Of a DNA stretch of 64,000 nt, positions 31,086-55,800 are shown piece by piece (the stretch's first letter is position 1; every line of letters starts with the position of its first letter). The notes beneath the pieces are model-generated. The model searched no databases and had not been told where the DNA came from. It was given only the letters and a program-made list of their open reading frames with translations. The DNA is taken from the sequence record PQ066597.1. One strand, written 5' to 3'. Position numbers and translations under genes: made by a program.

Positions 31086-31205
31086 ACAGATCTCGAACGT
31101 AGTGAGACGGCGTAGCCGCCTGTTCGCTTCGCTCACTCTTTCTAATTATAGATCTTCTATATAAATACTTATAGAGACTTTATACTTTGATTGCACTTGA
31201 AACTA
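31086..31205 (+). repeat. 120-bp structured element, copy A
   Basis: 114/120 identical to the reverse complement of 55681-55800 (manual alignment). Confidence 0.97.
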
Positions 31206-31219
31206 ATCCATAGACACGA

Positions 31220-31248
31220 AAAGCCTACCCAAAACAGGGTAGGCTTTT
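31220..31248 (-). terminator. terminator after gene 35
   Basis: AAAGCCTACCC / GGGTAGGCTTT arms with flanking T/A runs. Confidence 0.75.
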
Positions 31249-31252
31249 CATT

Positions 31253-34200
31253 TTATACCTTTTTCCAATTAACTGTCTGTAGTTTTACACCTACCAGACC
31301 AATTGGTCTTATGTCAATAACTTTATATTGACTAGATGGCTCTAACCAGTTATCTACATCAATATCTTTCGATATAACATAGTTATCAGTTCCTATATAT
31401 GCATATTTAGTTTGCAATATACCACCAATTTTTAAGGTTACTTCTAGCTGAGAATATGGTGTAACTTTTCCTTCAAACTCAATGACCATACTATGAGTTG
31501 AACCACCACTAACAATTTTAGATATCCTATTATTGTATATATAGATATCATCCTTCAACCTACCGTTCCCTGCTACATCACCCAGCACAGAATCCCATCC
31601 AACAACCCCACCACCAGTTTTAAGAAGAACAGAGCGTAGCTTCTTTCTGAATGTCAGAGTATTTTGAATAACATCGTTTTCTGGGATTATATATCCATTG
31701 TCAACTAAGTTATAAACTCGTGAGCTAGATACGGTATTTGTTGATTCTATCATATCAATTTGTTTGATGATACAGGATGAATTCCTCATACACATATCAG
31801 AAGATATCCCATCAACATGATTATATGTTGAATTGCTAATAACAGAGTTTGTTCTGATATATAGGTCTGGAAAATTGTATTGAATGTCAATATCAAATTC
31901 CTTACCAACAGTCATACCATGGTTAATGGTAATATTGCTTATATTAGAACCACGGTTTTTGACAACAAACTGTAAAGTGGTTGACGATAAAGTGATGAAT
32001 ATACCATGGGTTTTATCCGTATTATCTAGATAATAACCACTAGAGAAATTATCACCAACGAATCTCAGTCTCCATGAATCTTTTTGTGGTAACCACGCCG
32101 GTAATATATTTAGGTAATTGTTATTTGATAGGTTTGGAACCCAAGAACTCATTGTATTCCCGATCATTTGAGGTTCTTCAAATGTATTAAAGAAATACGA
32201 AGCCCCTGCTACGTTATAGCCGATAGCATCCGTTTTTGTGGAATATGCTACTAGGCTTCTGACAGTTACCACATCCCCATTTCTTGCATTTGGTACACAG
32301 ATATACAGACCCGAATCATGAGACGATTCTGTGTGGTTATGATAAATAACACCTTTAAATCTACCGTATGGTAAAGATTTTAGAATCTGACCGACACCAA
32401 CTGTTGTCCCATATACATCTTTAAGAAATAATGGTCTTGGACAATCGATATCATATTCTATTCTGTATCTTCCCTTTGCTGGCAAGTTAAGATGATATGT
32501 CATCCCACCCTCTGATACATCTTTCACAAATTTAAATCGGTTGTTGCTAACCACACTAATCGGTGAGTTTAGTTCATCCGACATTTTCCATTTAGACAGA
32601 TCAACAGTGTCATATACCAATACACCAGCATTATTCTGATCTTCTATACCCGTTGAGTAGTAGTTAAATCTAGATTCCTGTGTGTTTATATATGCTCGGG
32701 AATCATTATCCCCGACAATATTAATGTCCCATATTTGACCATTCAAACATTCAGTTTTTGAATATCTACCACCAATATTTCTGATTACCGAACCTTTTTT
32801 CAGTTCAACAACAATACTATGTGGAATATTAGGAGTAATTGCTTCACCGTTATATGGCTTTCCGTCCAATTGAACGATAGACATATATGTGGAAGAAAAA
32901 GCAAGTGCCTTCTGTCTAGATATATATAACCATCCACCTTGAAGTTCTTGAGCGTTAGAACTTCGTCCATCCAATAGATACATATTGAAATCTACGTTTC
33001 CAAAAATGAAATTGAATGTGGCATAACCAGATTTATTTATCAAATATACCGGTGGAATATCAACCATCGTACCCCCATTGAAATTGAAGGTGTATTTGTT
33101 GTTTTTAACCCATGATATAGTAGGTTTCTCACTAATTATGTCTGGGTCTGTGTAACAATCAACATCAAATTTAAGGTTAGTCATGTTACCAGCGGTTATC
33201 CAGTTTACACCGTCTTTCCTAAAGAAGAACATATGTCTAGGCTGTAAACCCTGTGTTTGTTGTCTTTCCGCAATAACCTCATATCTTTTGTTCATTTCAA
33301 TACCGGTATTCAACGTAGCACCGTTATTTTCAACTATGGTAACATAAGCCTTAGAACCGGTTTTCATTCCTGCTGGGATTAGTTGACTTCCGATACCGCA
33401 ATATAGCCAACCACCACCCGCATCAGGTGTGATATTGGAACCGGAATAATAAACACCACTAGCAGGAGAAGACCCTTTAATAAAAGGTAGTTTTTCTGAT
33501 TGTGGATATTCATAATATCTTGAATTATTTGGTAGCTCATAATCTTCATACTCCGAAGATATGATATACCCACTCATTTCAGAACCAACTCGAATTTCTT
33601 CAAACTCTCGTCTTGCTAAGTCTTCTATTGTTGTACTTCCAACTAAAACCCCGTTGACATAAAACTTCATACTTGGGCTATCAATTTCCAACTTATACAA
33701 ATATTCTTTATTACAAGAAATTATTTCATTCGTGGTTATCGTTTTTCCAGCATAAGTAACAATATGCCCCATACCAGTAGGATGAGTCTTTGTTGTCATA
33801 CCAATGAAAATAGTATCATCGGATCCAGATCCAACCCGGTTTACAGGTACGTTGGTATCTGTATAAACCATTGATATAAAATAAGAAAATTTCTTACCAA
33901 CTACCAATTTAGGGTCTTTTATATATTTTCCGTCATTATATGTGAAGTGTGGAAAACTGACATTTTCTAAATTACCATATTCAAATGCGGTAATATTTTT
34001 CTCTTTAATTCTACCTGCGATGTCCCCACTGGTTTCTATCGCGTCTTCTGTAATAAAACCCCATTGACCGAAAGAAGCAGTTCCGGATTTAACAACTACC
34101 GGTTTTTTCCTGAATACGGATACCGTGCGAACCCCAGTAGTACCAATATATTGGGATTTAACGGGCCATGACGTAGCATATACGGTTAATCTATCTATTG

Positions 34201-35032
34201 TGGTTGGAACAACAAAATCGTTATAAACAAAATCCCACTGCCCAGACGTATCAAGAGAACTGACATATCCGGAAGTCACGGAAGTATTTCCGTTATATCC
34301 AATATAATATAGTCTTATTGATTCACCAGCCGCCGCCGCTAGGTCGTCCCTATACGTCTCAAGGCTGAATCTAAGGGTTTCACCCCAGTTAACCACCATA
34401 TCAGATATAAGGGTTTTATTCATGAATGTTTTGAATTCCGCTGTTTTTGATTTTTCGTTTATATATTCCTGTTGGTCTGAGATGATATTGTTTCCATATC
34501 CTACAACACCAATATCATTGAACGTATCAAAAACAACTTCTAGAGAAACATTTATAAGCGAACTAACCCCAAATTGTTCTACCATAATCTTTTTCAGACC
34601 ACAGTCATATATTGCAGCGTATCGGGTGTTCTGTGTGTTTGTTGATGGATTCCAATGATTTGACCAACCAATACATCCAATTTTTTTGAAATAGTTGTTG
34701 ATTGATGTAGTTGTTATGTTTTCACCATGAGAGATCATTAGAATAATCCCACTACCAATGGAATTGATCCAACCTTCAAACCGATTGACGTCAGTTGAAT
34801 TCTTAAAATTAAAAACGTCTCGGATTCCAACACTGAGATCGTTGTTTATACTGATACACTCAAGACCGTCTATTTCTACTGGGTTAATTGAGTATCCGTT
34901 GATAGACGCAATTTTATTTTGAGTGTCTGTTTTTGGGGATATCTTGATCTGATTTAATCCAGAAAAGTTCTCTGATAATTTATTAGACTTGATACCGCCA
35001 TTTGAAATACTTGATATAACAAGTTCGGCCAT
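31253..35032 (-). CDS. 35: long tail fibre hinge gp35-like protein with large multi-domain C-terminal extension (about 1259 aa)
   Basis: Follows gene 34; gp35-like N-terminus; beta-rich lectin/LamG-like segments later; start moved to ATG 35032. Confidence 0.65.
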   Translation of the reverse strand: MAELVISSISNGGIKSNKLSENFSGLNQIKISPKTDTQNKIASINGYSINPVEIDGLECISINNDLSVGIRDVFNFKNSTDVNRFEGWINSIGSGIILMISHGENITTTSINNYFKKIGCIGWSNHWNPSTNTQNTRYAAIYDCGLKKIMVEQFGVSSLINVSLEVVFDTFNDIGVVGYGNNIISDQQEYINEKSKTAEFKTFMNKTLISDMVVNWGETLRFSLETYRDDLAAAAGESIRLYYIGYNGNTSVTSGYVSSLDTSGQWDFVYNDFVVPTTIDRLTVYATSWPVKSQYIGTTGVRTVSVFRKKPVVVKSGTASFGQWGFITEDAIETSGDIAGRIKEKNITAFEYGNLENVSFPHFTYNDGKYIKDPKLVVGKKFSYFISMVYTDTNVPVNRVGSGSDDTIFIGMTTKTHPTGMGHIVTYAGKTITTNEIISCNKEYLYKLEIDSPSMKFYVNGVLVGSTTIEDLARREFEEIRVGSEMSGYIISSEYEDYELPNNSRYYEYPQSEKLPFIKGSSPASGVYYSGSNITPDAGGGWLYCGIGSQLIPAGMKTGSKAYVTIVENNGATLNTGIEMNKRYEVIAERQQTQGLQPRHMFFFRKDGVNWITAGNMTNLKFDVDCYTDPDIISEKPTISWVKNNKYTFNFNGGTMVDIPPVYLINKSGYATFNFIFGNVDFNMYLLDGRSSNAQELQGGWLYISRQKALAFSSTYMSIVQLDGKPYNGEAITPNIPHSIVVELKKGSVIRNIGGRYSKTECLNGQIWDINIVGDNDSRAYINTQESRFNYYSTGIEDQNNAGVLVYDTVDLSKWKMSDELNSPISVVSNNRFKFVKDVSEGGMTYHLNLPAKGRYRIEYDIDCPRPLFLKDVYGTTVGVGQILKSLPYGRFKGVIYHNHTESSHDSGLYICVPNARNGDVVTVRSLVAYSTKTDAIGYNVAGASYFFNTFEEPQMIGNTMSSWVPNLSNNNYLNILPAWLPQKDSWRLRFVGDNFSSGYYLDNTDKTHGIFITLSSTTLQFVVKNRGSNISNITINHGMTVGKEFDIDIQYNFPDLYIRTNSVISNSTYNHVDGISSDMCMRNSSCIIKQIDMIESTNTVSSSRVYNLVDNGYIIPENDVIQNTLTFRKKLRSVLLKTGGGVVGWDSVLGDVAGNGRLKDDIYIYNNRISKIVSGGSTHSMVIEFEGKVTPYSQLEVTLKIGGILQTKYAYIGTDNYVISKDIDVDNWLEPSSQYKVIDIRPIGLVGVKLQTVNWKKV

Positions 35033-35047
35033 TATATTGCCCCTATG

Positions 35048-35071
35048 AAAAAGCCACCCCGTAGGATGGCT
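35048..35071 (-). terminator. terminator between 34 and 35
   Basis: Minus strand GCCATCC-TACG-GGGTGGC-TTTTT. Confidence 0.7.
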
Positions 35072-35079
35072 TTGTTTTA

Positions 35080-38000
35080 TTAACTGATCCAAACAAAGTC
35101 AACAGACTTGGTAGTTGGGTTTGCTCTTATTTCTAAGAATTCTCCGTTACCAACTGCTATCCTAAGTTTATTTACGGTTGTTGTTCCATTCAGGTTAGAA
35201 TCACCATTTACGGTTAGCGCTTTCACCGAATTGATGATAAGCTCGCCTGTCATGGTATCACCACCCTTAAACACACGAGAACCAGATGTAGTATTCATAT
35301 CGTCTATCACGGAATCCAGATAGTCTTTACGAATTGCATCATCAGGATCAATCGGTAATGCACTTCCTATCTTAACTTGAGCATTTACCTTTAGGTCACC
35401 ATTCGATTCAAACGATGATGTATTTGATGGCGAAGATAGACCATTAGGGCGAATTTGTAATCCACCAAGAGAACCAATATTCAAACTCTCGTTTGCGTTT
35501 ATGGTTATCCCACTCTTAGAAGTATTACCCATCCATATATTTTGGACACCGCTGTTCTTAAAATATGTAGTATTAACAAAAGTCTTGTTACCGGTAATAG
35601 TTTCTGCGAAGTTACCCGGTCCACGAACATATCTTTCTTCTGCATAAGCAAAACGAACAAGGTGGTTCCCAGACGTTGGGTTCTGTCCGCCGTTTTGAAC
35701 TTGGTTGGTGAATATTGCATTACCATCCCGTTCAACAGTAAAGATCCTATAATATCTACTGTTTTCGTCCATTGCGTTAAGGATTAATGGACCATCAATC
35801 GTGTTTACACCAAGATCTAAAAACGCATTGCTACCCTGACGTTTCCACTGGATCATGGATACATGAGATGTAGTCGATGTTTCGTTGAGATAGAAATAAG
35901 GTCTAATCTTCTCAATAGACGGATTTGCGGTAAACGTCATTTCGCCGGTTATTGTTTGTGCGATAGTACGACGAACCCAATCAGTTGAAGGTATACGGTT
36001 TCCACCAACCTCCATTGCACTGGCACTTACAGCCACAGCTTTAAGTGGTAGGAAATTAGCTAATGCTGTATTCAAACCTCTCGGGGAAACCAATACATCT
36101 CCATGTGCGTAGCCTGTTAATGCTCTTGTAGAACCAAGAATATCATTGCCTTCAAACACGGAGTTAGCAGAGTTGTTGTTTGACAATATTGCAGTAATAC
36201 CAACACCATATCTAGTATCAGTCATTCTATAACCTGCACTATTTCTAGAGCTGGTTAGAGCGGTTAACGGGGTTAGGTATTTTGTGTTGTTAGTACCGGT
36301 ATCAACCTCAGATTGAGTTGCAATTTGAGACAAACCCGTTTGGGTTGTAGTCGCTAGTCTTGCACTCAGTTTCTTTGGAGTTACGATAATTTCGTCATTT
36401 GCGGTTCCGGTCATATCGTTTACTTCATTCTGAGTTGCAATTCTAGCAGTGCCTCGTTGTGACTCAGTAGGAATAACGATATTAAAAGATTGACCTTCCC
36501 AAATATTACCAACGGTTCTAAGTCCCGATGTATCGAACACAGTCAGTCTTTCTCTAGCTAACCAGTTACCAAACGTTTTTGGAGTAACAAACCATTTGTC
36601 ATGTAATGTCCCTGCATCTACTTCCGCTTGTGTTGCGGTTTCGGACAAACCCCAACGGGTTTCTGTTGCGGTTCTACTTACAAGCCCTTTTGCGCTAACG
36701 TGTACGTTGTCACCAGCCGGTGGAGTGTTGCTAAGTACTTCTGCTGCGGTTGCAGCCCTTGACAACCCGGTTAGTGATGCTGTAGCCTGACGTCCTTCTA
36801 GGGTAGTTGCGGTTACTACTAGCGCACCGGTTGCGGTGTCAGCAGTACCTGTGTTAACCTCCCCTTGGTTGGCAATGTACACCATACCTTGTGAAAACTC
36901 AGTTGCGTTTTTCTCAAATAGAGTTTTCGGAGTGATTACCTTACTATGATCATTATAATCATAAACACCTGTACCCGGAGTTGTTCTTGTGGTAGGCTTA
37001 GTTCCATTAGCTGAGACAAGAGCCGATAAACCAGTCATGGACTCTGTGGCAACTCTACCGTTAAGGGTAGATGGTGTGACCGCAACCTGAGCCCAGTTTT
37101 CACCGGAACCGGATTGTGCGTTTGCTTGACTCTGTGTCGCTACCTTCAACAAACCACGCATTGTTGTTGTAGATAGACGGTCGTTCAACAGGAACGGGCT
37201 TATTGCCACCCCGGACCATGCTTCATCGGATAGGTTTCCACTAACTGCCTTTGATTCACTATTAGATGCATATCGGGTGATACCACGCCGGACGGTACTT
37301 GCTGTTTTGTTAGCCAATGTTTCTGCGGTAACAAAATCCTCACAATCTGGGTTTTGACCTGTCGTGATCTCTTCTTTGTTCTTGTTTACAGATGATTGAG
37401 ATGCAATGGCAGCCATACCATAAAATTCTGGTACATTTCGGTCTACTCGATACGGAATCTCAGACATAGTAACAACCGACCAAACGTCTTTACCAGAACC
37501 AAGAGCATTTGTGAAGTACACAAATTCCCACTGTTCCCCACGGTTTTGGATATCAAATGACTGAGTTTTTACGGTCTTTGATTCCATATTAGCAAGAAAA
37601 TCGCGGTATGCGCTGATCCGGGGGTTCATTAGAGTGTTACCATCGGGTACAAAGAAATCATTTGTACTGGATGCATCAATATTTAAAGTTAAAGTGGAAC
37701 CCCTTTTCATGTATCGTGTGTCTATAAAGAAGCTATCACCTCTTGCCGCATCACGAGGGAATGTAATGTTGACAGTCGACGGAGTTTCAGTATAAACTAC
37801 TAGTCGGTCGTTTGGTTGACCTAAGTATGTGGATGTTTTGACACTTTTCCAACGACTAAGGTTGTCAGCGTCGAAAACTCTCCAAGCGTTTAGACTTGAA
37901 TCAAAAACAAACATACCCCAATCTGTAGAATCAAAAACGACCGTTTTCATTGGGGTCGATCCGTATTCAACTATAATGTTGTGGCTACTACCCGGATGAA

Positions 38001-38772
38001 CGTTTACGGTTGTCTTTGTTACGGGGTTATTACCATCAAGATCATATGTGGTAATAGTATCACCGTTTCTGGCGTATTTTGGTAGTTGGATCTTAATTCC
38101 ACCAGTATATCTGGTTTCTCTCATCAACTGGTCACCAACAATGGATTTATAATATCCACCGGCTGGGTACGACTTGTTGCTGATAAATGATTTGTTTACA
38201 TCACCAGCGTATTCAGTTTGAACAAACCATTCGCTACCATTCAAAATGAAGTAGTTGGATGAATTTTTGGCTGTGATCTTATAAGAAGCCAAACCGGAAA
38301 TAGTTCTTCCATTACCAGAAACATCTATGGTATAATCGTGAAGATTAGAACCATTATCTCTGATAACAATAACGTCCCCATTAAGAGCATTAGTTGGTAA
38401 GGTAAATGTTACGTCGCTACTTATGGTCTGTGCCAATATGTGATCGCCAGCAGAAAGATTCGTCAACGCTGGTGCATTAGTCGTAACCAGCTTCCAACTT
38501 GGGTCTGTACGTACTGGTTTCCATTTTACCGGGTTGAATGCCTCGGGTGAGGTTATATCAACTTGGCTTAGGTATATTCGGTTATCATAGATAACAGCAA
38601 AGTTTTTGTCGTATGTTCTAGTTGCGTCATATAGTTGGATTGTGTTTTCTTGTACAAAGAAATCGACACTCACACCATCCATCTTTGAGTTAATATCGGG
38701 ATAACCGACGTTAACTATTTTTTGACCGGCGGCATCTAAGCCGTCGGTAACGCGAAACGGAATTGAAGACAT
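35080..38772 (-). CDS. 34: long tail fibre proximal subunit gp34
   Basis: FRVTDGLDAAGQKIVNV N-terminus, WKPVRTDPSW, repeated AT.T..G...ATQ.EV units. Confidence 0.95.
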   Translation of the reverse strand: MSSIPFRVTDGLDAAGQKIVNVGYPDINSKMDGVSVDFFVQENTIQLYDATRTYDKNFAVIYDNRIYLSQVDITSPEAFNPVKWKPVRTDPSWKLVTTNAPALTNLSAGDHILAQTISSDVTFTLPTNALNGDVIVIRDNGSNLHDYTIDVSGNGRTISGLASYKITAKNSSNYFILNGSEWFVQTEYAGDVNKSFISNKSYPAGGYYKSIVGDQLMRETRYTGGIKIQLPKYARNGDTITTYDLDGNNPVTKTTVNVHPGSSHNIIVEYGSTPMKTVVFDSTDWGMFVFDSSLNAWRVFDADNLSRWKSVKTSTYLGQPNDRLVVYTETPSTVNITFPRDAARGDSFFIDTRYMKRGSTLTLNIDASSTNDFFVPDGNTLMNPRISAYRDFLANMESKTVKTQSFDIQNRGEQWEFVYFTNALGSGKDVWSVVTMSEIPYRVDRNVPEFYGMAAIASQSSVNKNKEEITTGQNPDCEDFVTAETLANKTASTVRRGITRYASNSESKAVSGNLSDEAWSGVAISPFLLNDRLSTTTMRGLLKVATQSQANAQSGSGENWAQVAVTPSTLNGRVATESMTGLSALVSANGTKPTTRTTPGTGVYDYNDHSKVITPKTLFEKNATEFSQGMVYIANQGEVNTGTADTATGALVVTATTLEGRQATASLTGLSRAATAAEVLSNTPPAGDNVHVSAKGLVSRTATETRWGLSETATQAEVDAGTLHDKWFVTPKTFGNWLARERLTVFDTSGLRTVGNIWEGQSFNIVIPTESQRGTARIATQNEVNDMTGTANDEIIVTPKKLSARLATTTQTGLSQIATQSEVDTGTNNTKYLTPLTALTSSRNSAGYRMTDTRYGVGITAILSNNNSANSVFEGNDILGSTRALTGYAHGDVLVSPRGLNTALANFLPLKAVAVSASAMEVGGNRIPSTDWVRRTIAQTITGEMTFTANPSIEKIRPYFYLNETSTTSHVSMIQWKRQGSNAFLDLGVNTIDGPLILNAMDENSRYYRIFTVERDGNAIFTNQVQNGGQNPTSGNHLVRFAYAEERYVRGPGNFAETITGNKTFVNTTYFKNSGVQNIWMGNTSKSGITINANESLNIGSLGGLQIRPNGLSSPSNTSSFESNGDLKVNAQVKIGSALPIDPDDAIRKDYLDSVIDDMNTTSGSRVFKGGDTMTGELIINSVKALTVNGDSNLNGTTTVNKLRIAVGNGEFLEIRANPTTKSVDFVWIS

Positions 38773-38811: not shown

Positions 38812-38818
38812 TATTTAG
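38812..38818 (-). promoter_or_regulatory. late promoter CTAAATA for gene 34
   Basis: 40 nt upstream of the start. Confidence 0.7.
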
Positions 38819-48189: not shown

Positions 48190-48221
48190 GAAAAGCCCCA
48201 ACCGAAAAGGAAGGGGCTTTA
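48190..48221. terminator. bidirectional terminator at a convergent junction
   Basis: AAAAGCCCC...GGGGCTTT. Confidence 0.65.
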
Positions 48222-48225
48222 AAAA

Positions 48226-48507
48226 TCAAAAGTCTTCTACTTCCTCACCGCCTTCCTCTTGTTTAAAGGCTTCGCGGCGACCATCGATTGCATCACGGAT
48301 CTGAATATCATCAGTATCCGAAATAGCAACGGATTTTATTCGACTTTTATAATAACGCTCTAATTCGTCAAGCCCTTTGGGTGTCATCGCTGACATAATT
48401 TTACCCAAAAACTTTTCGATACTTACAGCAGGCTTGTCATCACCACCATCGGTGTTTTTTTCTTCTACCTCTTCTTGAAGGCGAAGATAATCAGCAAAGT
48501 ATATCAC
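48226..48507 (-). CDS. uvsW.1: UvsW.1
   Basis: SIEKFLGKIMSAMT..GLDEL..YY..R....ISDTDDIQIRDAI.GR. Confidence 0.9.
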   Translation of the reverse strand: MIYFADYLRLQEEVEEKNTDGGDDKPAVSIEKFLGKIMSAMTPKGLDELERYYKSRIKSVAISDTDDIQIRDAIDGRREAFKQEEGGEEVEDF

Positions 48508-50009
48508 AGTTCTATTTCCTTAATTTGATAGTCAAATTGTTCACTTGCATATCTTTCGATACGAAGCATTGCATGTTTGTAAGCATAATTTTTATGTGCA
48601 TATTTAACCGAGCCCGGTTTCGAATTTTTGGTCTCAATACATAGGTTATCTACGATATCCCATAGAGTGGCGATAGTCTTTTCTCCATGTTTTCGAAGAA
48701 CCCGACCAATACTCTGTAATGTGGTAACCTTAGATTTAAATGGGGAAGCGAAAATAACGTGGAATAGCTTTTTGATAGAAATACCTGTCGAGAATATACC
48801 AATAGAAGCAACGATAATCATTCCGTCGCTACCCTCTGCAATTTTCTTAAGCTGATCCCGTTCCTCTACGTTAGTATCGCCATTAGCAAAGAATACATTG
48901 TCATGTTTTTTTCTAAGGGCCTCATAAAGCTTCTTCCCATGTTCCTTATGCCTAAACAGTATCAAGGTATTCTCTTTCTTCTCTTTGGCTAATTTTAAAG
49001 CCAAACGACACACAAAAGCATTTCTCTTTGTATGTTCCTCGATATATTTAATCTCTTGTTGATATTCTATTCCTTTAGTTAATACACAATCTTGTTTAGG
49101 ATACCGCAAGAACAGGTTATTTATTTTAAGATCTGTTACTTGACCCTCTTCCATAAGTTGTTTAGTACTAACCGGCTTGAATACATCCCCAAACAAACCA
49201 ACATACGACATAATATTACATTTACCATCTTTCAAAGAACCACTCATACCCCATTTAAACGGGCACTCAGAGAGGTTTGTGATGATATTCTTAATTTCAC
49301 TACCTACGTTGTGACATTCATCAATCAAAAGAGCCCCAAATTGGCGGAACCAATGAACTGGTTGTTTCGATGCACTTTGCCATGTACTAACAAATACTGG
49401 TGCTGGGTGATCTTTTGTTTTACCAGCCATAATACCATGAGAAAATTCCCGTCTCATAAACTGATAATCTGCGAAATCGTCCATCATCTGAGTAACAAGG
49501 GAGGTTGTTGGAACGATTAGCAATATTTTCCCATCATAATTAGTCATATACCAGTAACAAATAAGAGCTGCTATTAGGGATTTACCGGCAGACGTAGGAA
49601 GGTTTAAGATACCCCGGTTATTCTGAATTGCGTAATAAACCGCATCAGCCTGATACCAGTGCGCGGTAATCTTATTTCCCCCAGAATATATATCAATATC
49701 AGCCAACCATTTATCAAACTCTTCTCTAGATGTGAAATGGTTAATAGGAGTAAAGTCTTCTTCTTTTTCAAATTCGTATTCGTTTCTAGCGCAATATTTC
49801 TCAAGGTTATTGACCAGACCATAAGGGAATTTTCCATCCGGTTGTAGGAGACGGATCCGACCATCCCAACCGCTATATTTAAACTTAGGATTAAATCTAG
49901 CGCCACCTTCCGTCTCAAATGAATAATACTCTCTCAGCTCCATGAAGATGTCACGTTCACATTCAATAATCGCATTACTATAGTCGTTGAATTTAACTGA
50001 TACTTTCAT
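48504..50009 (-). CDS. uvsW: SF2 helicase UvsW
   Basis: WDGRIRL, LPTSAGKS, IDECH, STGISIK, LQSIGRVLRK. Confidence 0.97.
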   Translation of the reverse strand: MKVSVKFNDYSNAIIECERDIFMELREYYSFETEGGARFNPKFKYSGWDGRIRLLQPDGKFPYGLVNNLEKYCARNEYEFEKEEDFTPINHFTSREEFDKWLADIDIYSGGNKITAHWYQADAVYYAIQNNRGILNLPTSAGKSLIAALICYWYMTNYDGKILLIVPTTSLVTQMMDDFADYQFMRREFSHGIMAGKTKDHPAPVFVSTWQSASKQPVHWFRQFGALLIDECHNVGSEIKNIITNLSECPFKWGMSGSLKDGKCNIMSYVGLFGDVFKPVSTKQLMEEGQVTDLKINNLFLRYPKQDCVLTKGIEYQQEIKYIEEHTKRNAFVCRLALKLAKEKKENTLILFRHKEHGKKLYEALRKKHDNVFFANGDTNVEERDQLKKIAEGSDGMIIVASIGIFSTGISIKKLFHVIFASPFKSKVTTLQSIGRVLRKHGEKTIATLWDIVDNLCIETKNSKPGSVKYAHKNYAYKHAMLRIERYASEQFDYQIKEIEL

Positions 50010-50043
50010 CTCATTCTCTCTTTAAATTTTTCACATATATAAT

Positions 50044-50064
50044 TATTTAGGGCAACACTAAATA
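50044..50064. promoter_or_regulatory. back-to-back late promoters CTAAATA
   Basis: Minus 50044-50050 towards uvsW; plus 50058-50064 towards ORF 50110. Confidence 0.65.
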
Positions 50065-50109
50065 AATGCGAGGGAATACCATTCCCTCGTGACGTAGGGA
50101 GAAAATAAA

Positions 50110-50472
50110 ATGCTTATAAATAGTAAGCTGTTTAAAGACACCCTACCCGTCCTAACCGTTATTGTGGCGATCTGGGCCTCTATATTTTCATATAATGAAT
50201 TTATAGCGGATTCCCGCCAAGTAGCTTTTAAAGAGCAAATCACTTCCCACATGGACAAATCTATAGATAACCTAAGAACGGAGATTAAATCTCTCCCAAA
50301 TAAGGATTCTGTAGAAACTGCTCAACTGCGGGCAATGCTTTATAGTAAGGATCTTATCGATGAGGTTAATAGGGGGAACCGAGTTGAATTGGAGAGACTT
50401 GAGAAGCGGATCAGTGAGATGGAAAACGCCAGAGTTGAGAAGAAAACTCAAACAAAACGCGAGGACGGTTAA
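50110..50472 (+). CDS. membrane-anchored coiled-coil protein
   Basis: TM-like LPVLTVIVAIWASIFSY followed by a helical charged region. Confidence 0.7.
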   Translation: MLINSKLFKDTLPVLTVIVAIWASIFSYNEFIADSRQVAFKEQITSHMDKSIDNLRTEIKSLPNKDSVETAQLRAMLYSKDLIDEVNRGNRVELERLEKRISEMENARVEKKTQTKREDG

Positions 50473-50531
50473 GTTGTCTAACGTGGGTCATGATGCAATT
50501 TGCTCATGGCCTTTTTTCTTTTAAAAAGGGG

Positions 50532-50561
50532 TTGACTCATGAAACTTGTGTGTAGTATTAT
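50532..50561 (+). promoter_or_regulatory. sigma70-type early promoter
   Basis: TTGACT - 18 nt - TATTAT, A-rich upstream. Confidence 0.6.
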
Positions 50562-50593
50562 CTATCTCGTTGAGACACAAAAGAGGAATTACA

Positions 50594-51076
50594 ATGCTGA
50601 ATGATCCTTACGAGTTGTTTTTTGATATGGATGGGGTGATGGCTGACTGGTGTCGTGCATTCGATGCTCGTTTTGGTGAGGGTGCGGCAGAACAGTTTGA
50701 CAGTCTGAACAAAGAAGATAAGAATCTTATCAAAGAAGAACTGGCAAATGGTAATTTCTATCGTCATCTTCCGGTGATGGAAAAAGGGGTTTCTCTGGTT
50801 ATTGAGATGGTTCGTAGTGGTCGCAAGGTAAGTATCTTAACCAGCGTCGGTCGTCAAAACCCAGAGAACGTAGTTCGCCAGAAGAAAGCTTGGGTCTCTT
50901 ATGTATATCCTGCTGACGTCGCTGCGGTACTGTTAGAAAACTTCCATTATACCCTGTGTAGTGAAGACAAAGCCGCGTTTGCTCGTCCTAACGTTTGTCT
51001 GGTTGATGACCGTGCCAAGAGCCGAATCCCGTTCATCGCTGCTGGTGGTGTTGCTGTTGATATCGCTGACCTTTAA
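50594..51076 (+). CDS. HAD-family 5'(3')-deoxyribonucleotidase-like protein
   Basis: LFFDMDGVMADW, ILTS, KAAFA, LVDDR. Confidence 0.85.
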   Translation: MLNDPYELFFDMDGVMADWCRAFDARFGEGAAEQFDSLNKEDKNLIKEELANGNFYRHLPVMEKGVSLVIEMVRSGRKVSILTSVGRQNPENVVRQKKAWVSYVYPADVAAVLLENFHYTLCSEDKAAFARPNVCLVDDRAKSRIPFIAAGGVAVDIADL

Positions 51077-51089
51077 GAGGAATTAATTA

Positions 51090-51425
51090 ATGTTGGTAGA
51101 AAGTTTGTCTGTTGGTGTTGTTTGTCTTGGTCTGGCATATGGTCTTGACAAGTTTTTAGGAACTGGTATATTTTCTTGGAAAGAGAAAACCCCATCAAAA
51201 CTGATGCGATCTAACGCAGATCAAGATTCAGTAATGAGGAACCAACACCACCAAAAAGGTATGATCGCCAAAAATGTGTTTGGTAAATTTTATGGTGGAA
51301 AACACAAAGCTAGGGTAAGTTATACCGAGAAAGAAATTTGTGTCCCCCACCCGGTAATTGTTAACTTTATTAACAACCTTTATAAAGAAAGGAAACAAAA
51401 ATGTGTAACGAAGAATTGCAAGTAA
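51090..51425 (+). CDS. hypothetical protein with N-terminal hydrophobic segment
   Basis: 111 aa, SD AGAGG. Confidence 0.65.
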   Translation: MLVESLSVGVVCLGLAYGLDKFLGTGIFSWKEKTPSKLMRSNADQDSVMRNQHHQKGMIAKNVFGKFYGGKHKARVSYTEKEICVPHPVIVNFINNLYKERKQKCVTKNCK

Positions 51426-51724
51426 AATACCCAAACATTTATTTTTCGAAGTACTGCACAGGGTCTTATTGGCGAAAAGGGGTTGGTGGTCGAGATGCAG
51501 AAGCACTCCCACGAAACAAACCACTTGAGTTCCTTAACGAACAGTGTGGTTTGGTAAATGTAGGTGTTCGATATTTTGTATGTACTTGTTGTGGTACTGC
51601 ACAAGACGAAGACCAACTTGTTGGTAATGTGTTTGCTGGGAAATATTGCAAAACCTGCTATGACAAAGAGCCACAAATTCGCAAATCTATTGCTGAAAGC
51701 AAAAAACCCGGTTTTTACGACTAA
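51401..51724 (+). CDS. hypothetical zinc-finger protein
   Basis: CTCCG...YCKTCY cysteine pairs. Confidence 0.7.
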   Translation: MCNEELQVKYPNIYFSKYCTGSYWRKGVGGRDAEALPRNKPLEFLNEQCGLVNVGVRYFVCTCCGTAQDEDQLVGNVFAGKYCKTCYDKEPQIRKSIAESKKPGFYD

Positions 51725-51739
51725 ATAAAAGGAAATAAT

Positions 51740-52741
51740 ATGATTTTTGTAAAATATAACTCTCTTGAGAACCACTATCGTCAAACCGTCATCGACTCTT
51801 TTGCAACTTCCGGATATACTGCAAAGGGTGTTGAATGGGTTGCAATGGAAAAGATTCATGGTACTAATTTTCAACTTGCTGTAAATGATGAACATGTACA
51901 GGCTGGTCGTCGAACTGATCTTCTTGGTGATTTTGACCAGTTTTATGAAGCAGACCTGATTGTAAAGAAATATCATGATAATGCCCGAAAAGTATACAAT
52001 TTTGTTAAACAAAAACATCCAGAAGTTGATCAAGTAACAATCTTCGGGGAATATGCTGGTAATCTTACTACTGGTAAAATGATTCAAAAAGAAGTAGAGT
52101 ATGGAGATCAAGACTTTTATGTGTTTGATATCTTCATTTTCTCTGGTGAAACTGGAATGTACCTCTCCCACGATTTCGTTATGGATGCAATCGATGGGAT
52201 CTTCAAACATGCCCCTGTTATCTACCGTGGGGATTTCGATGGTGTAACAAAACTCCCGAACGACTTCCAATCAGTTGTTATCCCAAGCAACAAAGCAGGA
52301 AAATTCGATCTTGTTGAAGGAACTGATAACATTGCGGAGGGGTTTGTTGCGAAGACAGTAGACCCACATTATACCCGTCAAGGTCGGACTATTTTCAAAT
52401 CTAAAAACTCCAAGTTTACAGAGAAAGGGAAATCTGACAAACCGGTAAAGGTAAAAGAGCCTCTGGGTGAATCAGATCTTGCTATGGTTCATGAGATTGC
52501 TGAATATATCAACGTGAATCGTCTTAAAAATGTCCTCAGTAAGATTGGGATCCCTACCACCAAAGAGTTTGGTAAGGTTTCTGGTAACCTCTCGAAAGAC
52601 GCAATTGAAGATTTCACGAAGGATACCAGCAAAAATCTACGAGATGCAGAACGTCCTTCTGATGTAGGTAAAGCAGTGAACAACCTAGCAGGGGAACTTG
52701 TTCGGGAACACTGGATGAATATCCTTGATGGAAATTTCTAA
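51740..52741 (+). CDS. rnlB: RNA ligase 2
   Basis: KYNSLENHY, EKIHGTNF, FGEYAG, FYVFDI, AEGFVAK, KSKNSKFTEK. Confidence 0.95.
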   Translation: MIFVKYNSLENHYRQTVIDSFATSGYTAKGVEWVAMEKIHGTNFQLAVNDEHVQAGRRTDLLGDFDQFYEADLIVKKYHDNARKVYNFVKQKHPEVDQVTIFGEYAGNLTTGKMIQKEVEYGDQDFYVFDIFIFSGETGMYLSHDFVMDAIDGIFKHAPVIYRGDFDGVTKLPNDFQSVVIPSNKAGKFDLVEGTDNIAEGFVAKTVDPHYTRQGRTIFKSKNSKFTEKGKSDKPVKVKEPLGESDLAMVHEIAEYINVNRLKNVLSKIGIPTTKEFGKVSGNLSKDAIEDFTKDTSKNLRDAERPSDVGKAVNNLAGELVREHWMNILDGNF

Positions 52742-52751
52742 AAATAAATGA

Positions 52752-52789
52752 AAAAAGGCTTGCCAATGGGTGAGCCTTTTTGATATCTT
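52752..52789 (+). promoter_or_regulatory. early promoter overlapping a terminator-like palindrome
   Basis: AAAAAGGCT/AGCCTTTTT arms (52752-60, 52773-81); TTGCCA - 18 nt - TG.TATCTT. Confidence 0.55.
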
Positions 52790-52825
52790 ATCCATATCGA
52801 AACAAGAGACAAAAAGGAACGAACC

Positions 52826-53461
52826 ATGAACAACGAAAAATTCAATGAAATTATGGAAAACGTAGTTGGTATGGTTGAAGCCGGTTTTGTTTCTAAGGCC
52901 GGTCAGAAACGCGCCCTGAACGAATGCGCAAAAATGATGGAACTGGTGCGGGCCGAATTCTCTTCTTTCTATCTGGACTCCATCCACATCGAACAGCGTA
53001 ATATGAATCTTCCGGAACACGAAGCAGCGGTAGACCTTTATTATGCACAACCAAACACCGCGACTTTCGCCAAATATCTGGTAAAAGCAGAAAAAGCAAT
53101 GCCTTGGATGGATAAAGCTCTGTGTGAAGAATTGGTTTCTATGGGTGAACAGGTTGTTGCTATGATTGAAACAGTTAAAAACGCTCCAATCAACCAACCA
53201 GAACCGAAAGTTAGCGAGAAAGAAGCCGTTATCAAGAAAAACATCATGGAGATCATGGAACTTCGGGGTGAACAGTTCAACCGGTGTCTTCGTTTGGATG
53301 AGATGTTTGGTCGGATGATGGTAACCGCTAACGTGCACCTTGTTCGTGGACACAAAGGTACTGTGTTTGTTCGCGCCTTCTACTACGTTTGTGGACACCT
53401 GACCCCCCTGAATGTAATCATTGCTGCTATGGAAGAAGCAGCAAAAAAAGAAACCAAATAA
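52826..53461 (+). CDS. hypothetical early protein
   Basis: 211 aa, strong SD; C-terminal HLVRGHKGTVFVRAFYYVCGHLTPL. Confidence 0.8.
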   Translation: MNNEKFNEIMENVVGMVEAGFVSKAGQKRALNECAKMMELVRAEFSSFYLDSIHIEQRNMNLPEHEAAVDLYYAQPNTATFAKYLVKAEKAMPWMDKALCEELVSMGEQVVAMIETVKNAPINQPEPKVSEKEAVIKKNIMEIMELRGEQFNRCLRLDEMFGRMMVTANVHLVRGHKGTVFVRAFYYVCGHLTPLNVIIAAMEEAAKKETK

Positions 53462-53482
53462 CTTTAAATTGAGGAATGAAAA

Positions 53483-54202
53483 ATGAAAAAGCGGTTTGTT
53501 AGTTTTGCTATCTTAGGTGCTATGTGTGCTATTAGTGCGGTACAGGTTAATGCGGCATCTTTTGACTGTGAGAAAGCATCGAGTAAAATAGAACGAACTA
53601 TTTGTGCAGACGAACGGCTGAGTGAATCAGATGAGAAACTGAATTCTGTTTATAAAGAAGTTCGAAAAATTAACCCAGCAATCATAGAAGGTCAGCGAGA
53701 TTGGGTCAAACGTCGTAATAAAGCATCTTCAATCGAAGAACTTGACCAACTCCATGAAACACGGATCCAAGAACTTGAGGCCATGCTTAAACCAATCATC
53801 GAACAAGATGATGAAAGTGTATTCACCCGTGCGGAAAAACCAAAAATCAAGAAAGTGTCTGTTGTTGAAAATAAAAACGTAGTGAAAGACATTAAATATT
53901 ATGTCGATGAAGTACAACGTACTGGTGGAATGACTGGTAAGGACGGATTCTTTTCTGCAAAAGAAGTTGGGAAGGGTTACCCTAGCTGGTTAAAAGGTTG
54001 TGGGATTATGGTAGGAGAAGTACACGGTACAAAATACTTCATCAACGACGCCAAGAAATATGGTCAATTTGATATCTATGTTAATAATGAGCATAGCTTT
54101 AAAATTGTTGCTGCAAACATGATGATCAAATATATGGTGGATTCCGTGAAGGGTGATTTGGGTCTTGTTAAAATCATGTGTGATTCCGGAGAATTATATT
54201 AA
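53483..54202 (+). CDS. secreted LprI/DUF1311-like (lysozyme inhibitor-like) protein
   Basis: Signal peptide ending VNA-A, then SFDCEKASSKIERTICADERLSESDEKLNSVY...QRDWVKRRN. Confidence 0.8.
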   Translation: MKKRFVSFAILGAMCAISAVQVNAASFDCEKASSKIERTICADERLSESDEKLNSVYKEVRKINPAIIEGQRDWVKRRNKASSIEELDQLHETRIQELEAMLKPIIEQDDESVFTRAEKPKIKKVSVVENKNVVKDIKYYVDEVQRTGGMTGKDGFFSAKEVGKGYPSWLKGCGIMVGEVHGTKYFINDAKKYGQFDIYVNNEHSFKIVAANMMIKYMVDSVKGDLGLVKIMCDSGELY

Positions 54203-54468
54203 TGAACCCAAAAGCTCGTGAATTGATGATAGAGCTATTCAATAGCGGGATCGAGTGTAGGTTGGTATCTTCATCCACAAGCTCTTATATCGACGTACAG
54301 GGGCATATGGTGAGGGTTTCAGACCACGGAGGTCATTCTAAGTTCAAAGGAACTCAGATCCGAAAAGATCATGGCTATAAAAAGACCAAATATGGCATGA
54401 TCTTTGGGTATAACGAGATTGGGATGGCAGTAAAATATCTCAAATCCCTAAATACATTAACAAACTAA
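54202..54468 (+). CDS. hypothetical basic protein
   Basis: 88 aa, TAATG overlap; VRVSDH motif. Confidence 0.7.
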   Translation: MNPKARELMIELFNSGIECRLVSSSTSSYIDVQGHMVRVSDHGGHSKFKGTQIRKDHGYKKTKYGMIFGYNEIGMAVKYLKSLNTLTN

Positions 54469-54480
54469 GAGGAATGCGAA

Positions 54481-55278
54481 ATGGCATTGAATTATGTAGA
54501 AGAACCAGTAGAAAAAGAAACTAAACCAAAAAAGTCTACTGTGAAAAAACAAAAAGAACTTGACCTTGGGGTAATCAACGAAATTGTTGATGCTAATACC
54601 GCACCAGAAGCGAAAGCGAAAATTCAAGCATATGCTAAGGAATGTGGTTTTAAAATTAGCAAGTCTAATACTTCGGTTGACGATATGATCGTTAAACTCC
54701 TTGAAATGGCGGACGCCAAAGAGAATGAAAAACTGGACCTTGCACCGGAACCGAAAGAAAAAACCCCTTTTGTCGAACCAGTTGTAGTCGATGATGAATT
54801 CGACAATGTAGAAGAGGTTATTGAACTTGGTGTGGTTGAATCAATCAAAATTGATGATGGGGTGGTTAATATCAATACTCCTAACGATGTTAAAATTGAA
54901 TTCACTCCACCGAAACAACCAGAATATATTGATGCTTCTGGGTTTAAAACTCTCGACGAATTAATTGAAGATGAAAAGAAGTTCGTTAAAGAAAAAATGA
55001 ATTTGGAAACTACTAAAGATACCCAAGAACCGGATTTGACTTATGGTTTCAAGCCGAAAGTAAATCTGATTGGTGCTGTTGGTAACCAATACCTAAATTG
55101 CCCGTATTGGATTCTTGATTGGATCCTTGAGAAAGGACCGTCTTGGAAGAGTATTATTGATACTCATGAACGCGAACCGGATAAAGCACTTCTGAAAACA
55201 GTTCTTTATTACATCCAGATTAATGGTAGTGTGACATTGCGCGAGAGTCGTAATTCTCGTTTCCATACCATTTACTAA
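54481..55278 (+). CDS. inh: inhibitor of prohead protease
   Basis: C-terminal PYWILDWI...LYYIQINGSVTLRESRNSRF matches Inh; CTAAATA at 54448-54454. Confidence 0.88.
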   Translation: MALNYVEEPVEKETKPKKSTVKKQKELDLGVINEIVDANTAPEAKAKIQAYAKECGFKISKSNTSVDDMIVKLLEMADAKENEKLDLAPEPKEKTPFVEPVVVDDEFDNVEEVIELGVVESIKIDDGVVNINTPNDVKIEFTPPKQPEYIDASGFKTLDELIEDEKKFVKEKMNLETTKDTQEPDLTYGFKPKVNLIGAVGNQYLNCPYWILDWILEKGPSWKSIIDTHEREPDKALLKTVLYYIQINGSVTLRESRNSRFHTIY

Positions 55279-55283
55279 TATCT

Positions 55284-55308
55284 AGCCATCCTACTGGGTG
55301 GCTTTTTT
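55284..55308 (+). terminator. terminator after inh
   Basis: GCCATCC-TACT-GGGTGGC-TTTTTT. Confidence 0.75.
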
Positions 55309-55363
55309 GTATCCCTAAATACCAATTGACTGACCATTTTGGTCAATATAAGAAGGGTGTTTA

Positions 55364-55585
55364 ATGGAATACAATTTCATCGAAGTTAATGAAAATATTT
55401 TTGTTCTTACTGGATATTTCGGATCTTATAATTTGATTGAGAGATGGAAAAGACTTGAAGAAGATGACCATTTAATGATCGTGAAGATAAAGGAATATTT
55501 GGGGAAGGGGAATATTGTGGTTGTACATGATGTACAAGAAGATTTATTCGTTAAGCTAGATGGAGATAAATTTTACGTTTTTTGA
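55364..55585 (+). CDS. hypothetical protein
   Basis: 73 aa, CTAAATA at 55315-55321, followed by hairpin AGGTGGTC-GAGA-GATCACCT-TTTT. Confidence 0.65.
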   Translation: MEYNFIEVNENIFVLTGYFGSYNLIERWKRLEEDDHLMIVKIKEYLGKGNIVVVHDVQEDLFVKLDGDKFYVF

Positions 55586-55680
55586 TTTCGTATTGTATCA
55601 GACATTACGAATGTTTTTAACTTTTATACTTAGGTGGTCGAGAGATCACCTTTTTTGTATCTTTTATATACAAAATAAAA

Positions 55681-55800
55681 TAGTTTCACTTGTAATCAAA
55701 GTATAAAATCTCTATAAGTATTTATATAGAAGATCTATAATTAGAAAGTGTGAGCGAAGCGAACAGGCGGCTACGCCGTCTCACTACGTTCGAGATCTAT
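55681..55800 (-). repeat. 120-bp structured element, copy B (inverted relative to copy A)
   Basis: Reverse complement matches 31086-31205 at 114/120 positions. Confidence 0.97.

Follow-up and report, generated by a model that had tools for sequence, protein, structure and literature searches.

A six-copy hairpin and palindrome cassette at fixed intergenic sites in the genomes of T4-like Aeromonas phages

The repeat pair and its surroundings

The DNA analyzed here (the window; 64,000 nucleotides) spans positions 62001-126000 of the 230-kb genome of Aeromonas phage vB_AdhaM_G2, hereafter G2. Two inverted copies of a non-coding element, A and B, lie in it 24.5 kb apart, and their coordinates and those of the neighboring features are given in Table 1. 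The homing endonuclease gene beside copy A occupies the same place in phage 65 (85% amino acid identity). The sigma70-like promoter abutting copy A has a phage 65 counterpart scoring 10/12, and the terminator hairpin on the other side is kept in phage 65 and ZPAH1. Beside copy B, the CTAAATA motif keeps its position in phage 65, avDM6 and ZPAH1.

Table 1. Features around copies A and B in the window.
Feature	Position	Strand	Remarks
SegE-like GIY-YIG homing endonuclease gene, left neighbor of copy A	30003..30905	+	Pfam PF19835, E=3e-30; annotation
Small ORF (39 aa), between homing endonuclease gene and copy A	30902..31021	-	Phage 65 counterpart, 45% identity over 31 aa
Sigma70-like promoter TTTACA-17-TACTAT, directed at the small ORF	31055..31083	-	Abuts left end of copy A, outside the repeat
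Copy A	31086..31205	+	Top orientation on + strand; H hairpin ~31094-31136; P palindrome and tail 31141-31205 (alignment-derived limits)
Intrinsic-terminator hairpin with A and T runs on both sides	31218..31249		Separates copy A from the 3' end of gene 35
Gene 35 (long tail fibre proximal connector), right neighbor of copy A	31253..35032	-	Annotation; 49% aa identity to phage 65
Intrinsic terminator, 30 nt before copy B	55632..55651	+	After 73-aa ORF 55364-55585
Copy B	55681..55800	-	Top orientation on - strand; P and tail 55681-55745; H hairpin ~55750-55792
CTAAATA late-promoter motif of the phage group, pointing into copy B	55814..55820	-	Strand opposite to flanking genes
DprA-like gene, start 38 nt past copy B	55839..56399	+	Annotation; weak Pfam match

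Direct comparison of copy A with the reverse complement of copy B confirmed identity at 114 of 120 positions, and the adjoining 60 nt matched at only 15 and 19 positions, which is the random level and agrees with the flanks having been described as unrelated. A repeat search of the window recovered the same pair (31088-31205 and 55681-55798; 118 nt, 96%), with a BLAST E-value of 1e-50 for the match within the 230-kb genome. The next-longest repeat in the window was 39 nt, so the initial annotation was correct that nothing else of this size is present, and it was equally correct about the non-coding nature of the repeat and the unusual length of the gaps that hold it. These are 30906-31252 for copy A (31022-31252 should the small ORF be genuine) and 55586-55838 for copy B, compared with mostly less than 100 bp for the other intergenic gaps listed for the G2 genome. 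The placement of copy A after gene 35 has to be revised, as the ORF to its left encodes the homing endonuclease and gene 35 lies to its right. Mis-assembly, which had been named as a possible source of the pair, is excluded for the G2 record because the junction contexts of A and B each recur unbroken in about 15 independently assembled relatives.

A six-copy family with a modular anatomy

BLASTN of the element against the full G2 genome returned exactly six copies, without additional degenerate ones. A and B are therefore not a special pair but two members of a dispersed family (A, B, c1, c2, c5 and c6) in mixed orientations, three of the six lying in core regions. The copies are 92-99% identical over about 118 nt, and each consists of a GC-rich imperfect hairpin (H), an AT-rich imperfect palindrome of about 50 bp (P) and a 20-nt tail (TTTGATTnCAnnTGAAACTA). 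The GC content of P and tail is 23%, against 61% in the neighboring H hairpin and 39% in the window. P is a dyad with arms of 16-17 nt, near perfect in phage 65, and at each of its outer ends a -10-like hexamer faces outward (TATAAT on one strand and TATAAT or TATACT on the other). These two hexamers correspond to the invariant blocks, TCTAATTATA and CTTTATA(A/C)TTTGATT, that are common to both variants of P described below. In G2-type copies, the heptamer TAGATCT stands at the left border and is repeated inside P.

The copy alignment gave a 10-pair consensus for the H hairpin, with several GU/GC alternations and, at the tip, a G-C pair exchanged for C-G; as read from this alignment, the exchange shows covariation of the hairpin tip. 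H is flipped relative to P in G2 c6 and in ZPAH1 copy B. The modules can thus flip relative to one another, which argues that structure, rather than sequence, matters. Near-invariant sequence amounts to about 63 nt, which is more than a promoter or a terminator needs.

Conservation, age and concerted evolution

Each of the six sites has an ortholog in phage 65, where the flanks are about 70% identical, and the sites in CC2 and ZPAH1 are orthologous as well. As far as genome comparison shows, the six sites are fixed across two genera and occupied in all sequenced Aeromonas T4-like phages of the subfamily Emmerichvirinae (Ceceduovirus and Ishigurovirus), to which the element is private. Because of this orthology the copies are ancient, and the recent duplication that had been suggested from their near identity was not supported. 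The other explanations offered at the time, gene conversion or strong selection, fit the comparative data. The P and tail of G2 are 92-97% identical to those of ZPAH1 and about 84% identical to those of phage 65, well above the flanking DNA (about 70-72%) and the flanking proteins, which at c1 are only 33-36% identical. Additionally, P exists in two variants, each common to all copies of one genome: type I in G2, CC2 and ZPAH1, and type II in phages 65 and avDM6 and two metagenome contigs. Conservation above the surroundings, combined with a single P variant per genome, indicates purifying selection together with concerted evolution, probably through gene conversion.

These observations also bear on whether the element is functionless for the phage, being a selfish, MITE-like miniature mobile element or the product of a recent duplication. 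Its short, non-coding, hairpin-rich sequence, its intergenic location in both orientations and the TAGATCT repeat of G2-type copies would suit such an origin. The element has no terminal inverted repeats, however, its two ends being unrelated, and the TAGATCT repeat is internal and lineage-specific, being absent from the phage 65 copies. There is no presence/absence polymorphism among G2, CC2 and phage 65, which share the same six sites, and conservation far above that of the flanks argues for constraint. Copies of the element were absent from 185,579 bacterial or archaeal species genomes and from other viral contigs. We consider a selfish element extremely unlikely. A host origin was also rejected, as neither the P nor the H pattern occurred in the same 185,579 genomes.

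Copies A and B as a possible inversion pair

The initial annotation had proposed that copies A and B recombine by UvsX/UvsY-type homologous recombination to give two isomers of the 24.5-kb segment, and that the element family seeds the rearrangements seen relative to T4. Several features made this plausible. The A/B pair, 118 nt at 95-96% identity, is longer than the roughly 50 bp that T4 recombination is said to need according to Singer et al. in 1982. The window carries phage genes annotated as repair or recombination proteins, and concerted evolution shows that the copies do exchange sequence. The T4 gene order runs 34-35-36-37, and copy A does sit where this order is interrupted, the succession here being gene 35, element, homing endonuclease gene and nrdA.

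The deposited assemblies did not bear out the existence of two isomers. Both parental junctions were unbroken in all 20 of the 20 relatives with readable junctions, representing two genera, and a search of deposited phage records for the predicted swapped junction found none, the best coverage being 57%. With regard to the seeding of breakpoints, the replacement of both neighbor genes at c2 between G2 and phage 65 speaks in its favor, though c2 is the sole such site. No copy lies at the other breakpoint in T4 order (genes 36/37; 176-181 kb in G2), and five of the six sites, A, c1, c5 and c6 among them, have orthologous neighbors on both sides. Support for the element seeding rearrangements is therefore weak.

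One deposited record, AP1, joins the left flank of copy A through the element to the right flank of c5, which would count as recombination through the element. AP1 is, however, a 254-kb mosaic in scrambled order, with no elements at its other junctions; the record was set aside as uninformative, and the join is most likely an assembly artefact. In AS-zj, AS-sw and AsSzw2, copy A seems partly deleted, which was considered as evidence of dispensability or mobility, but the records have runs of N and poly-A there. Both the scrambling of AP1 and the N-filled copies elsewhere appear to reflect difficulty in assembling the repeat.

Neither the window nor the whole G2 genome has an annotated recombinase or invertase, and the sole nuclease near the segment bounded by A and B is the GIY-YIG homing endonuclease. 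A connection between the element and this SegE-like gene was rejected, since the gene is present at only one of the six sites, in the same place in both genera, and no mechanistic link was found. The invertible G segment of phage Mu and C segment of phage P1 have an adjacent serine invertase (Gin or Cin) and crossover sites of about 26-34 bp, and both orientations are found. The present locus resembles them in that an inverted repeat pair flanks a segment including tail-fibre genes, but differs in having no annotated recombinase, repeats of 118 nt, a segment of 24.5 kb and a single observed orientation. There is no sign in the deposited genomes of the element ever having flipped the DNA between its copies, and the cassette is probably not an inversion switch. 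We regard the recombination scenario as a whole as very unlikely; reciprocal crossovers between copies would be very rare or selected against.

A proposed role in transcription or RNA punctuation

The reading that we favor, tentatively and with slightly less than even confidence, is that the cassette serves as an orientation-tolerant unit of transcription or RNA punctuation at gene boundaries, its copies kept alike by selection and gene conversion. It would usually lie between the terminator of the upstream gene and the ribosome-binding site of the next, in either orientation. A canonical terminator or long hairpin was found just upstream of the element at A, B, c1, c5 and c6. At c1, c2, B and c5, the start of a gene follows 8-76 nt past the element. 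The tail end is followed by a Shine-Dalgarno sequence and ATG at c2 (8-12 nt) and faces the hub gene at c5, while at c1, B and c6 the downstream gene is faced by the opposite, hairpin end. The orientation of the element relative to the local genes is mixed, which we counted against the punctuation reading.

Within such a unit, the H hairpin may, in RNA, terminate transcription, insulate or protect transcript ends. Its GU/GC alternations suggest RNA-level constraint, and at c2 of phage 65 the H tip together with the T-rich tail gets a terminator-like score. With canonical terminators already ahead of most copies, there is no obvious need for H in that capacity. Whole-element RNA folds were no more stable than those of shuffled sequences (z = -0.6 and -1.6), and a search of Rfam assigned no family, giving only chance-level matches, mostly to the neighboring terminator.

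The P dyad, in turn, may be a factor-dependent, bidirectional start or operator region. A consensus scan of G2 copies A, B and c1 and phage 65 copies A and c2 found no canonical sigma70 -35/-10 pair, and the element matches neither the early consensus of the phage (TTGAC…TGnGATACT) nor the late motif CTAAATA. Two promoter candidates were weighed. The first, a T4 late promoter represented by TATAAATA in the G2 P module, has 22 occurrences in the genome, 6 of them in the element, and stands upstream of no late gene; it was also ruled out by its absence from the phage 65 copies and by CTAAATA being the late motif of the group. The second, TTGAAA/TTGTAA-17-TATAAG on the opposite strand, read as an early sigma70 promoter, was not adopted: it lacks the -7 T, went unreported in the scan and does not resemble the early consensus of the phage. 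Gene conversion between the copies would run through the homologous-recombination machinery of the phage itself.

A possible DNA-level site

Alternatively, the six cassettes could be replication origins of the oriF/oriG kind, or an array recognized by a DNA-binding phage protein, with dyad symmetry and spacing mattering rather than transcripts. On the circular map the copies are evenly spaced, with gaps of 24.6-48.4 kb (G2, P(min gap) = 0.006 and P(sd) = 0.001 in a post hoc test; phage 65 similar), and because the genomes are collinear this spacing counts as a single evolutionary observation. A DNA site would be consistent with the independence from orientation, the module flips and the long AT-rich dyad beside a GC-rich hairpin; the long invariant stretch suits protein recognition, and co-evolution with a binding protein would be consistent with all copies having switched together between two P variants.

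The minimal T4 origins oriF/ori(uvsY) and oriG/ori(34) are units of about 100 bp with a MotA-dependent middle promoter as transcription start signal and an A+T-rich, easily unwound stretch (DUE), and they share no sequence (Kreuzer & Brister 2010, PMC3016281). The cassette is likewise a unit of this size with several dispersed sites per genome, copy A adjoining genes 35 and 34. It differs in occurring as six near-identical copies and in having no MotA box: by eye, neither P variant has a TGCTT-type box about 30 nt upstream of its -10-like hexamers, and there is no canonical promoter. A six-fold identical origin would be unprecedented in the group, given that the T4 origins share no sequence motif (PMC3016281), and the GU/GC alternations in H favor constraint on RNA. 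GC skew, tried as a test for origins, tracked gene strand only and gave no signal.

The unusually even spacing keeps a DNA-level role, origin-like or protein-binding, as a candidate, although we judge it unlikely. Its more specific form, in which the cassettes would be chromosome landmarks (oriF/oriG-like origins or a dimeric-protein site array) whose P variants reflect co-evolution and were spread by gene conversion, appears more doubtful still. If true, T4-like phages would have their first multi-copy family of origins or landmarks defined by sequence.

Relation to other dispersed repeats and significance

Bacterial chromosomes carry ERIC/IRU, REP/BIME and Neisseria Correia elements, imperfect palindromes of about 35-150 bp that lie in transcribed intergenic regions in either orientation and influence termination, mRNA stability or promoter activity. 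They number tens to hundreds of copies with polymorphic presence, and Correia elements have terminal inverted repeats and TA duplications. The phage element differs in its six fixed sites and in lacking terminal inverted repeats and target-site duplications.

The promoter-early stem-loops (PeSLs) of the T4-type phages RB49/phi1, PST/T4 and nt-1/KVP40 (Arbiol et al. 2010, PMC2839356; Comeau et al. 2014, PMC4122927) are closer. Both are composite intergenic cassettes of about 100 bp, repeated around the genome, in which a stem-loop stands beside an AT-rich, promoter-like region; in the element, H abuts P. In both, the cassette can lie just upstream of the Shine-Dalgarno sequence of a gene, as the element does at c2. 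Copies of both are substrates for homologous exchange. Neighbor-gene replacement, known for PeSLs, is seen here at c2 only, the neighbors at c1, A, c5 and c6 being orthologous. PeSLs, in contrast, have a sigma70-like -35/N17/-10 promoter, occur by the dozen, cluster in hyperplastic regions, are co-oriented with genes and share only motifs. The element has six copies, evenly dispersed with core regions included, in both orientations relative to genes, nearly identical throughout and fixed in position across genera, and its long dyad and conserved tail have no PeSL counterpart. Since it contains no canonical sigma70, early or late promoter of the phage, it resembles PeSLs but is not a member.

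T4-like phages are models for recombination-driven genome evolution, and to our knowledge few sequence-defined dispersed repeats are known in them besides PeSLs. The cassette offers a clean natural case of concerted evolution, that of six dispersed 118-bp repeats in a virulent phage genome, and illustrates that dispersed repeats in both orientations can persist for long without fixing inversions or deletions. Its anatomy (a structural hairpin, a long AT-rich dyad and even spacing) points to a previously unrecognized regulatory or chromosomal signal in jumbo Aeromonas phages. These phages are in development for phage therapy in aquaculture, and at a practical level the repeat degrades their short-read assemblies, as seen in the Ns, the poly-A fillers and the scrambled 254-kb record.

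A six-copy repeat family with modular anatomy

Direct comparison of window positions 31086-31205 (copy A) with the reverse complement of 55681-55800 (copy B) showed identity at 114/120 positions, with the adjoining 60 nt of the two copies agreeing at the random level (15/60 and 19/60). This confirmed the 120-bp inverted repeat with unrelated flanks as described in the initial annotation, which had also noted no further repeat of such size in the window; a repeat search indeed returned the A/B pair (118 nt, 96%), and every other repeat was 39 nt or shorter. The window is identical to positions 62001-126000 of Aeromonas phage vB_AdhaM_G2 (G2; PQ066597.1), a 229.6-kb T4-like jumbo phage whose close relatives are classified in Straboviridae, Emmerichvirinae, Ceceduovirus. 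Across the whole G2 genome the A/B match had a BLAST E value of 1e-50, and similarity by chance is excluded. The two copies are a genuine repeat pair, but not the sole one of their kind, as a genome-wide BLASTN check raised the number in G2 to six; BLAST and an nhmmer profile agreed on exactly six copies, without degenerate extras (c1, c2, A, B, c5 and c6).

Copy A sits between two convergent genes. The T4 gene order is broken after gene 35, as had been noted, with genes 36/37 lying 85 kb away in G2; the left neighbour of copy A is, however, a SegE-like homing endonuclease gene and not gene 35. In Ceceduovirus and Ishigurovirus alike, this endonuclease gene has a fixed place between nrdA and gene 35 (85% amino acid identity), and a conserved hydrophobic 39-aa ORF on the opposite strand extends over its stop codon. 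Copy B is flanked by two plus-strand genes, a 73-aa ORF whose terminator lies 30 nt before it and a DprA-like gene 38 nt beyond it.

Coordinates of the element copies and of features discussed in the text (plain, window; G2, whole genome)
Feature	Coordinates	Strand	Basis or remark
c1	G2 3142-3253	+	BLAST/nhmmer
c2	G2 51527-51640	-	BLAST/nhmmer
A	G2 93081-93215	+	BLAST/nhmmer
B	G2 117681-117798	-	BLAST/nhmmer
c5	G2 159892-160009	+	BLAST/nhmmer
c6	G2 190092-190164	+	BLAST/nhmmer
SegE-like GIY-YIG homing endonuclease, 300 aa, left of copy A	30003-30905	+	Pfam PF19835, E = 3e-30
39-aa ORF just left of copy A	30902-31021	-	conserved in phage 65
Sigma70-like promoter of 39-aa ORF	31055-31083
Gene 35, right of copy A, then gene 34	31253-35032	-	annotation
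CTAAATA late motif	29971-29977	+
CTAAATA late motifs	38812-38818, 58114-58120, 58161-58167, 59979-59985, 60937-60943, 63908-63914	all -
CTAAATA aimed into copy B	55814-55820	-
Terminator AGCCATCCTAC(G/T)GGGTGGCT	35052-35071	-
Same terminator	55284-55303	+
Same terminator	G2 159862-159886		just left of c5
Palindrome right of c1	G2 3262-3335
Palindrome left of c6	G2 189985-190055
DNA polymerase, two adjacent ORFs	10617-13309	-	annotation
UvsW-like helicase, two ORFs	48226-50009	-	annotation

Each element is built from three modules. The H module is a GC-rich (61% GC), imperfect hairpin of ~43 nt, CGAACGTAGTGAG-ACGGCGTAGCCGCC-TGTTCGCTTCGCTCAC; the P module is an AT-rich, imperfect palindrome of ~50 nt, with arms of 16-17 nt in phage 65 (AATTATAAAGTT(T)CTAT / ATAGAACTTTATAATT); and the tail reads TTTGATTnCAnnTGA(A/T)ACTA. 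The GC content of P plus tail is 23%, versus 39% for the window. The consensus of H from 8 distinct sequences contains 10 pairs, AGUGAG/UUCGCU with a GC tip of 4 bp; one pair has changed from G-C to C-G, three are G-U in some sequences and G-C in others (or U-G and C-G) as read on the written strand, and the tips vary between copies (GGCG/CGCC, CGCC/GGCG, CGGC/GCCG, GGGC/GCCC). The predicted hairpin is thus supported by comparative data. Additionally, G2 c6 and ZPAH1 B have H turned around with respect to P, ZPAH1 copy A has an inverted P plus tail, with tails on both sides, and phage 65 c5 (locus L019, 5360-5560) has a head-to-head pair of P-plus-tail modules surrounding GC hairpins. Since the modules flip in this way, the structure and the dyad tolerate either orientation.

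Age, conservation and concerted evolution

In phage 65 (Ishigurovirus), the element was found at 6/6 orthologous sites, where the flanking DNA is ~70% identical to that of G2, and it was present in CC2 and ZPAH1 at each site examined. At c1, A, c5 and c6, G2 and phage 65 have orthologous genes directly beside the element, with amino acid identities of just 33% and 36% at c1. The copies are therefore older than the split of Ceceduovirus and Ishigurovirus, which refutes the recent duplication proposed initially as one source of the A/B similarity. For P plus tail, G2 shares 92-97% identity with ZPAH1 (flanks 72%) and ~84% with phage 65, and the element is the best-conserved sequence of its neighbourhoods.

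Two variants of P were observed. Every copy in G2, CC2 and ZPAH1 is of type I (...ATTATAGATCTTCTATATAAATACTTATAGAGA...), and every copy in phages 65 and avDM6 is of type II (...ATTATAAAGTTTCTATTAATATATTATAGAA...), which also occurs in two metagenome contigs. Such a multi-base difference, shared by each of the six or seven copies in a genome, is the hallmark of concerted evolution, which could come from gene conversion among copies, possibly alongside co-evolution with a trans-factor. Because conservation between genomes is high, purifying selection is required as well. The alternative of gene conversion or selection, also raised initially, is thus backed by the P variants shared within genomes and by conservation above that of the flanks.

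Pattern scans found the family only in the 65, CC2 and AS-zj entries of IMG/VR and in two short metagenome contigs, and none of 185,579 bacterial or archaeal species genomes scanned carries it; the family is private to this Aeromonas phage clade. No description of the element was found in the literature searched. Altogether, the element is real, ancient, conserved and, as far as we found, undescribed.

Inversion and rearrangement

The initial annotation had proposed that the A/B pair flips the segment between the copies, giving two genome isomers, and seeds rearrangements. Neither part of this inversion/REARRANGEMENT idea was supported by the 20 available genomes. Queries across the A and B junctions aligned without a break, and with unchanged relative order, to ~15 Ceceduovirus records and to the Ishigurovirus records, and a synthetic swapped junction (A-left, element and reversed inner B flank) was at most 57% covered in any record, corresponding to one flank plus the repeat. 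Thus, no sequenced relative has the inverted segment. Three apparent exceptions proved to be artefacts or of no informative value. One is c2, the only site with the pattern of the promoter-early stem-loops (PeSLs) of T4-type phages: the genes on either side of it differ between G2 and phage 65 through replacement.

A join of A-left to c5-right through the element does occur in AP1 (MT713136.1, 119000-137000); this 254-kb record was rejected as an exception, being a scrambled mosaic with several junctions lacking the element. AS-zj, AS-sw and AsSzw2 were likewise rejected, as Ns or poly-A run across their copy A. All four of these deposited close-relative genomes are faulty at the repeat; the AP1 mosaic consists of G2-like segments.

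Judging from their concerted evolution, the copies clearly exchange sequence non-reciprocally. In principle this makes inversion at a low level plausible, but there is no sign of fixed, frequent or functional inversion. Crossovers between direct copies would delete tens of kb of essential genes, so selection must oppose reciprocal outcomes.

Transcription signals and putative function

A consensus scan found no sigma70 -35/-10 pair inside any copy tested, and the element did not match the early-promoter consensus of G2 (TTGAC…N17…TGnGATACT). The late genes of G2 carry CTAAATA (often CCCTAAATA) rather than the TATAAATA of T4; this group motif lies upstream of genes 34, 24, 23, 22 and 20 and of the SegE-like endonuclease gene. 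TATAAATA occurs 22 times in G2 against ~35 expected, with 6/22 inside the element, where it belongs to type I P and is missing from type II. It was consequently rejected as a late promoter, and its presence in type I P is probably coincidental. Invariant across P variants are two outer-dyad blocks, TCTAATTATA and CTTTATA(A/C)TTTGATT, which give an outward-facing TATAAT on one strand and TATAAT/TATACT on the other.

The surroundings are alike from copy to copy. A canonical terminator or long hairpin belonging to the upstream gene usually lies ahead of the element, and the next start codon with its ribosome-binding site is found within 8-76 nt past it, on the tail side at c2 and c5 and on the hairpin side at c1 and B. 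At c2 of phage 65, the tip of H and the T-rich stretch behind it are scored as terminator-like. Whole-element folds were of no unusual stability and Rfam gave no match to the element, which weakens a purely RNA-structural role. The favoured reading, falling slightly short of probable, is that the element is an orientation-tolerant transcription/RNA punctuation cassette. In it, H would function at the RNA level, and the dyad, which bears the outward -10-like hexamers, would form a factor-dependent start or operator region. Such a cassette would work like PeSLs (PMC2839356, PMC4122927); however, the sigma70 promoter that defines these was not found, and the element is therefore not filed as a member. 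It is instead a variant within the known dispersed hairpin-plus-promoter-like cassettes of T4-like phages, with a putative function.

A less probable alternative to the cassette reading is a DNA-level role, as a replication origin resembling T4 oriF/oriG (PMC3016281) or as an array of protein-binding sites. Even spacing, the long dyad, orientation independence and the ~100-bp size would fit such a role. The gaps between copies on the circular map are 48.4, 41.6, 24.6, 42.2, 30.2 and 42.7 kb; in a post hoc test of random placement, 0.6% of trials reached so large a minimum gap and 0.1% were as evenly spaced. The spacing in phage 65 is not independent evidence, since the two genomes are collinear, and GC skew, which follows gene strand only, does not help an origin reading.

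Additional sequence features

Opposite the strand of the genes flanking copy B, a CTAAATA conserved in the same position in phage 65, avDM6 and ZPAH1 could drive a short late antisense RNA stopping at the hairpin. A second small repeat family, a terminator hairpin, was found at at least three gene ends, twice near the element. Outside the window, long near-perfect palindromes with a common motif (AATCAATT…AATTGATT) adjoin c1 and c6, and the one beside c1 is conserved in ZPAH1. The DNA polymerase and UvsW-like helicase are each annotated as two ORFs. Split-gene arrangements have been described for some T4 relatives, and the polymerase and UvsW-like ORF pairs look similar.
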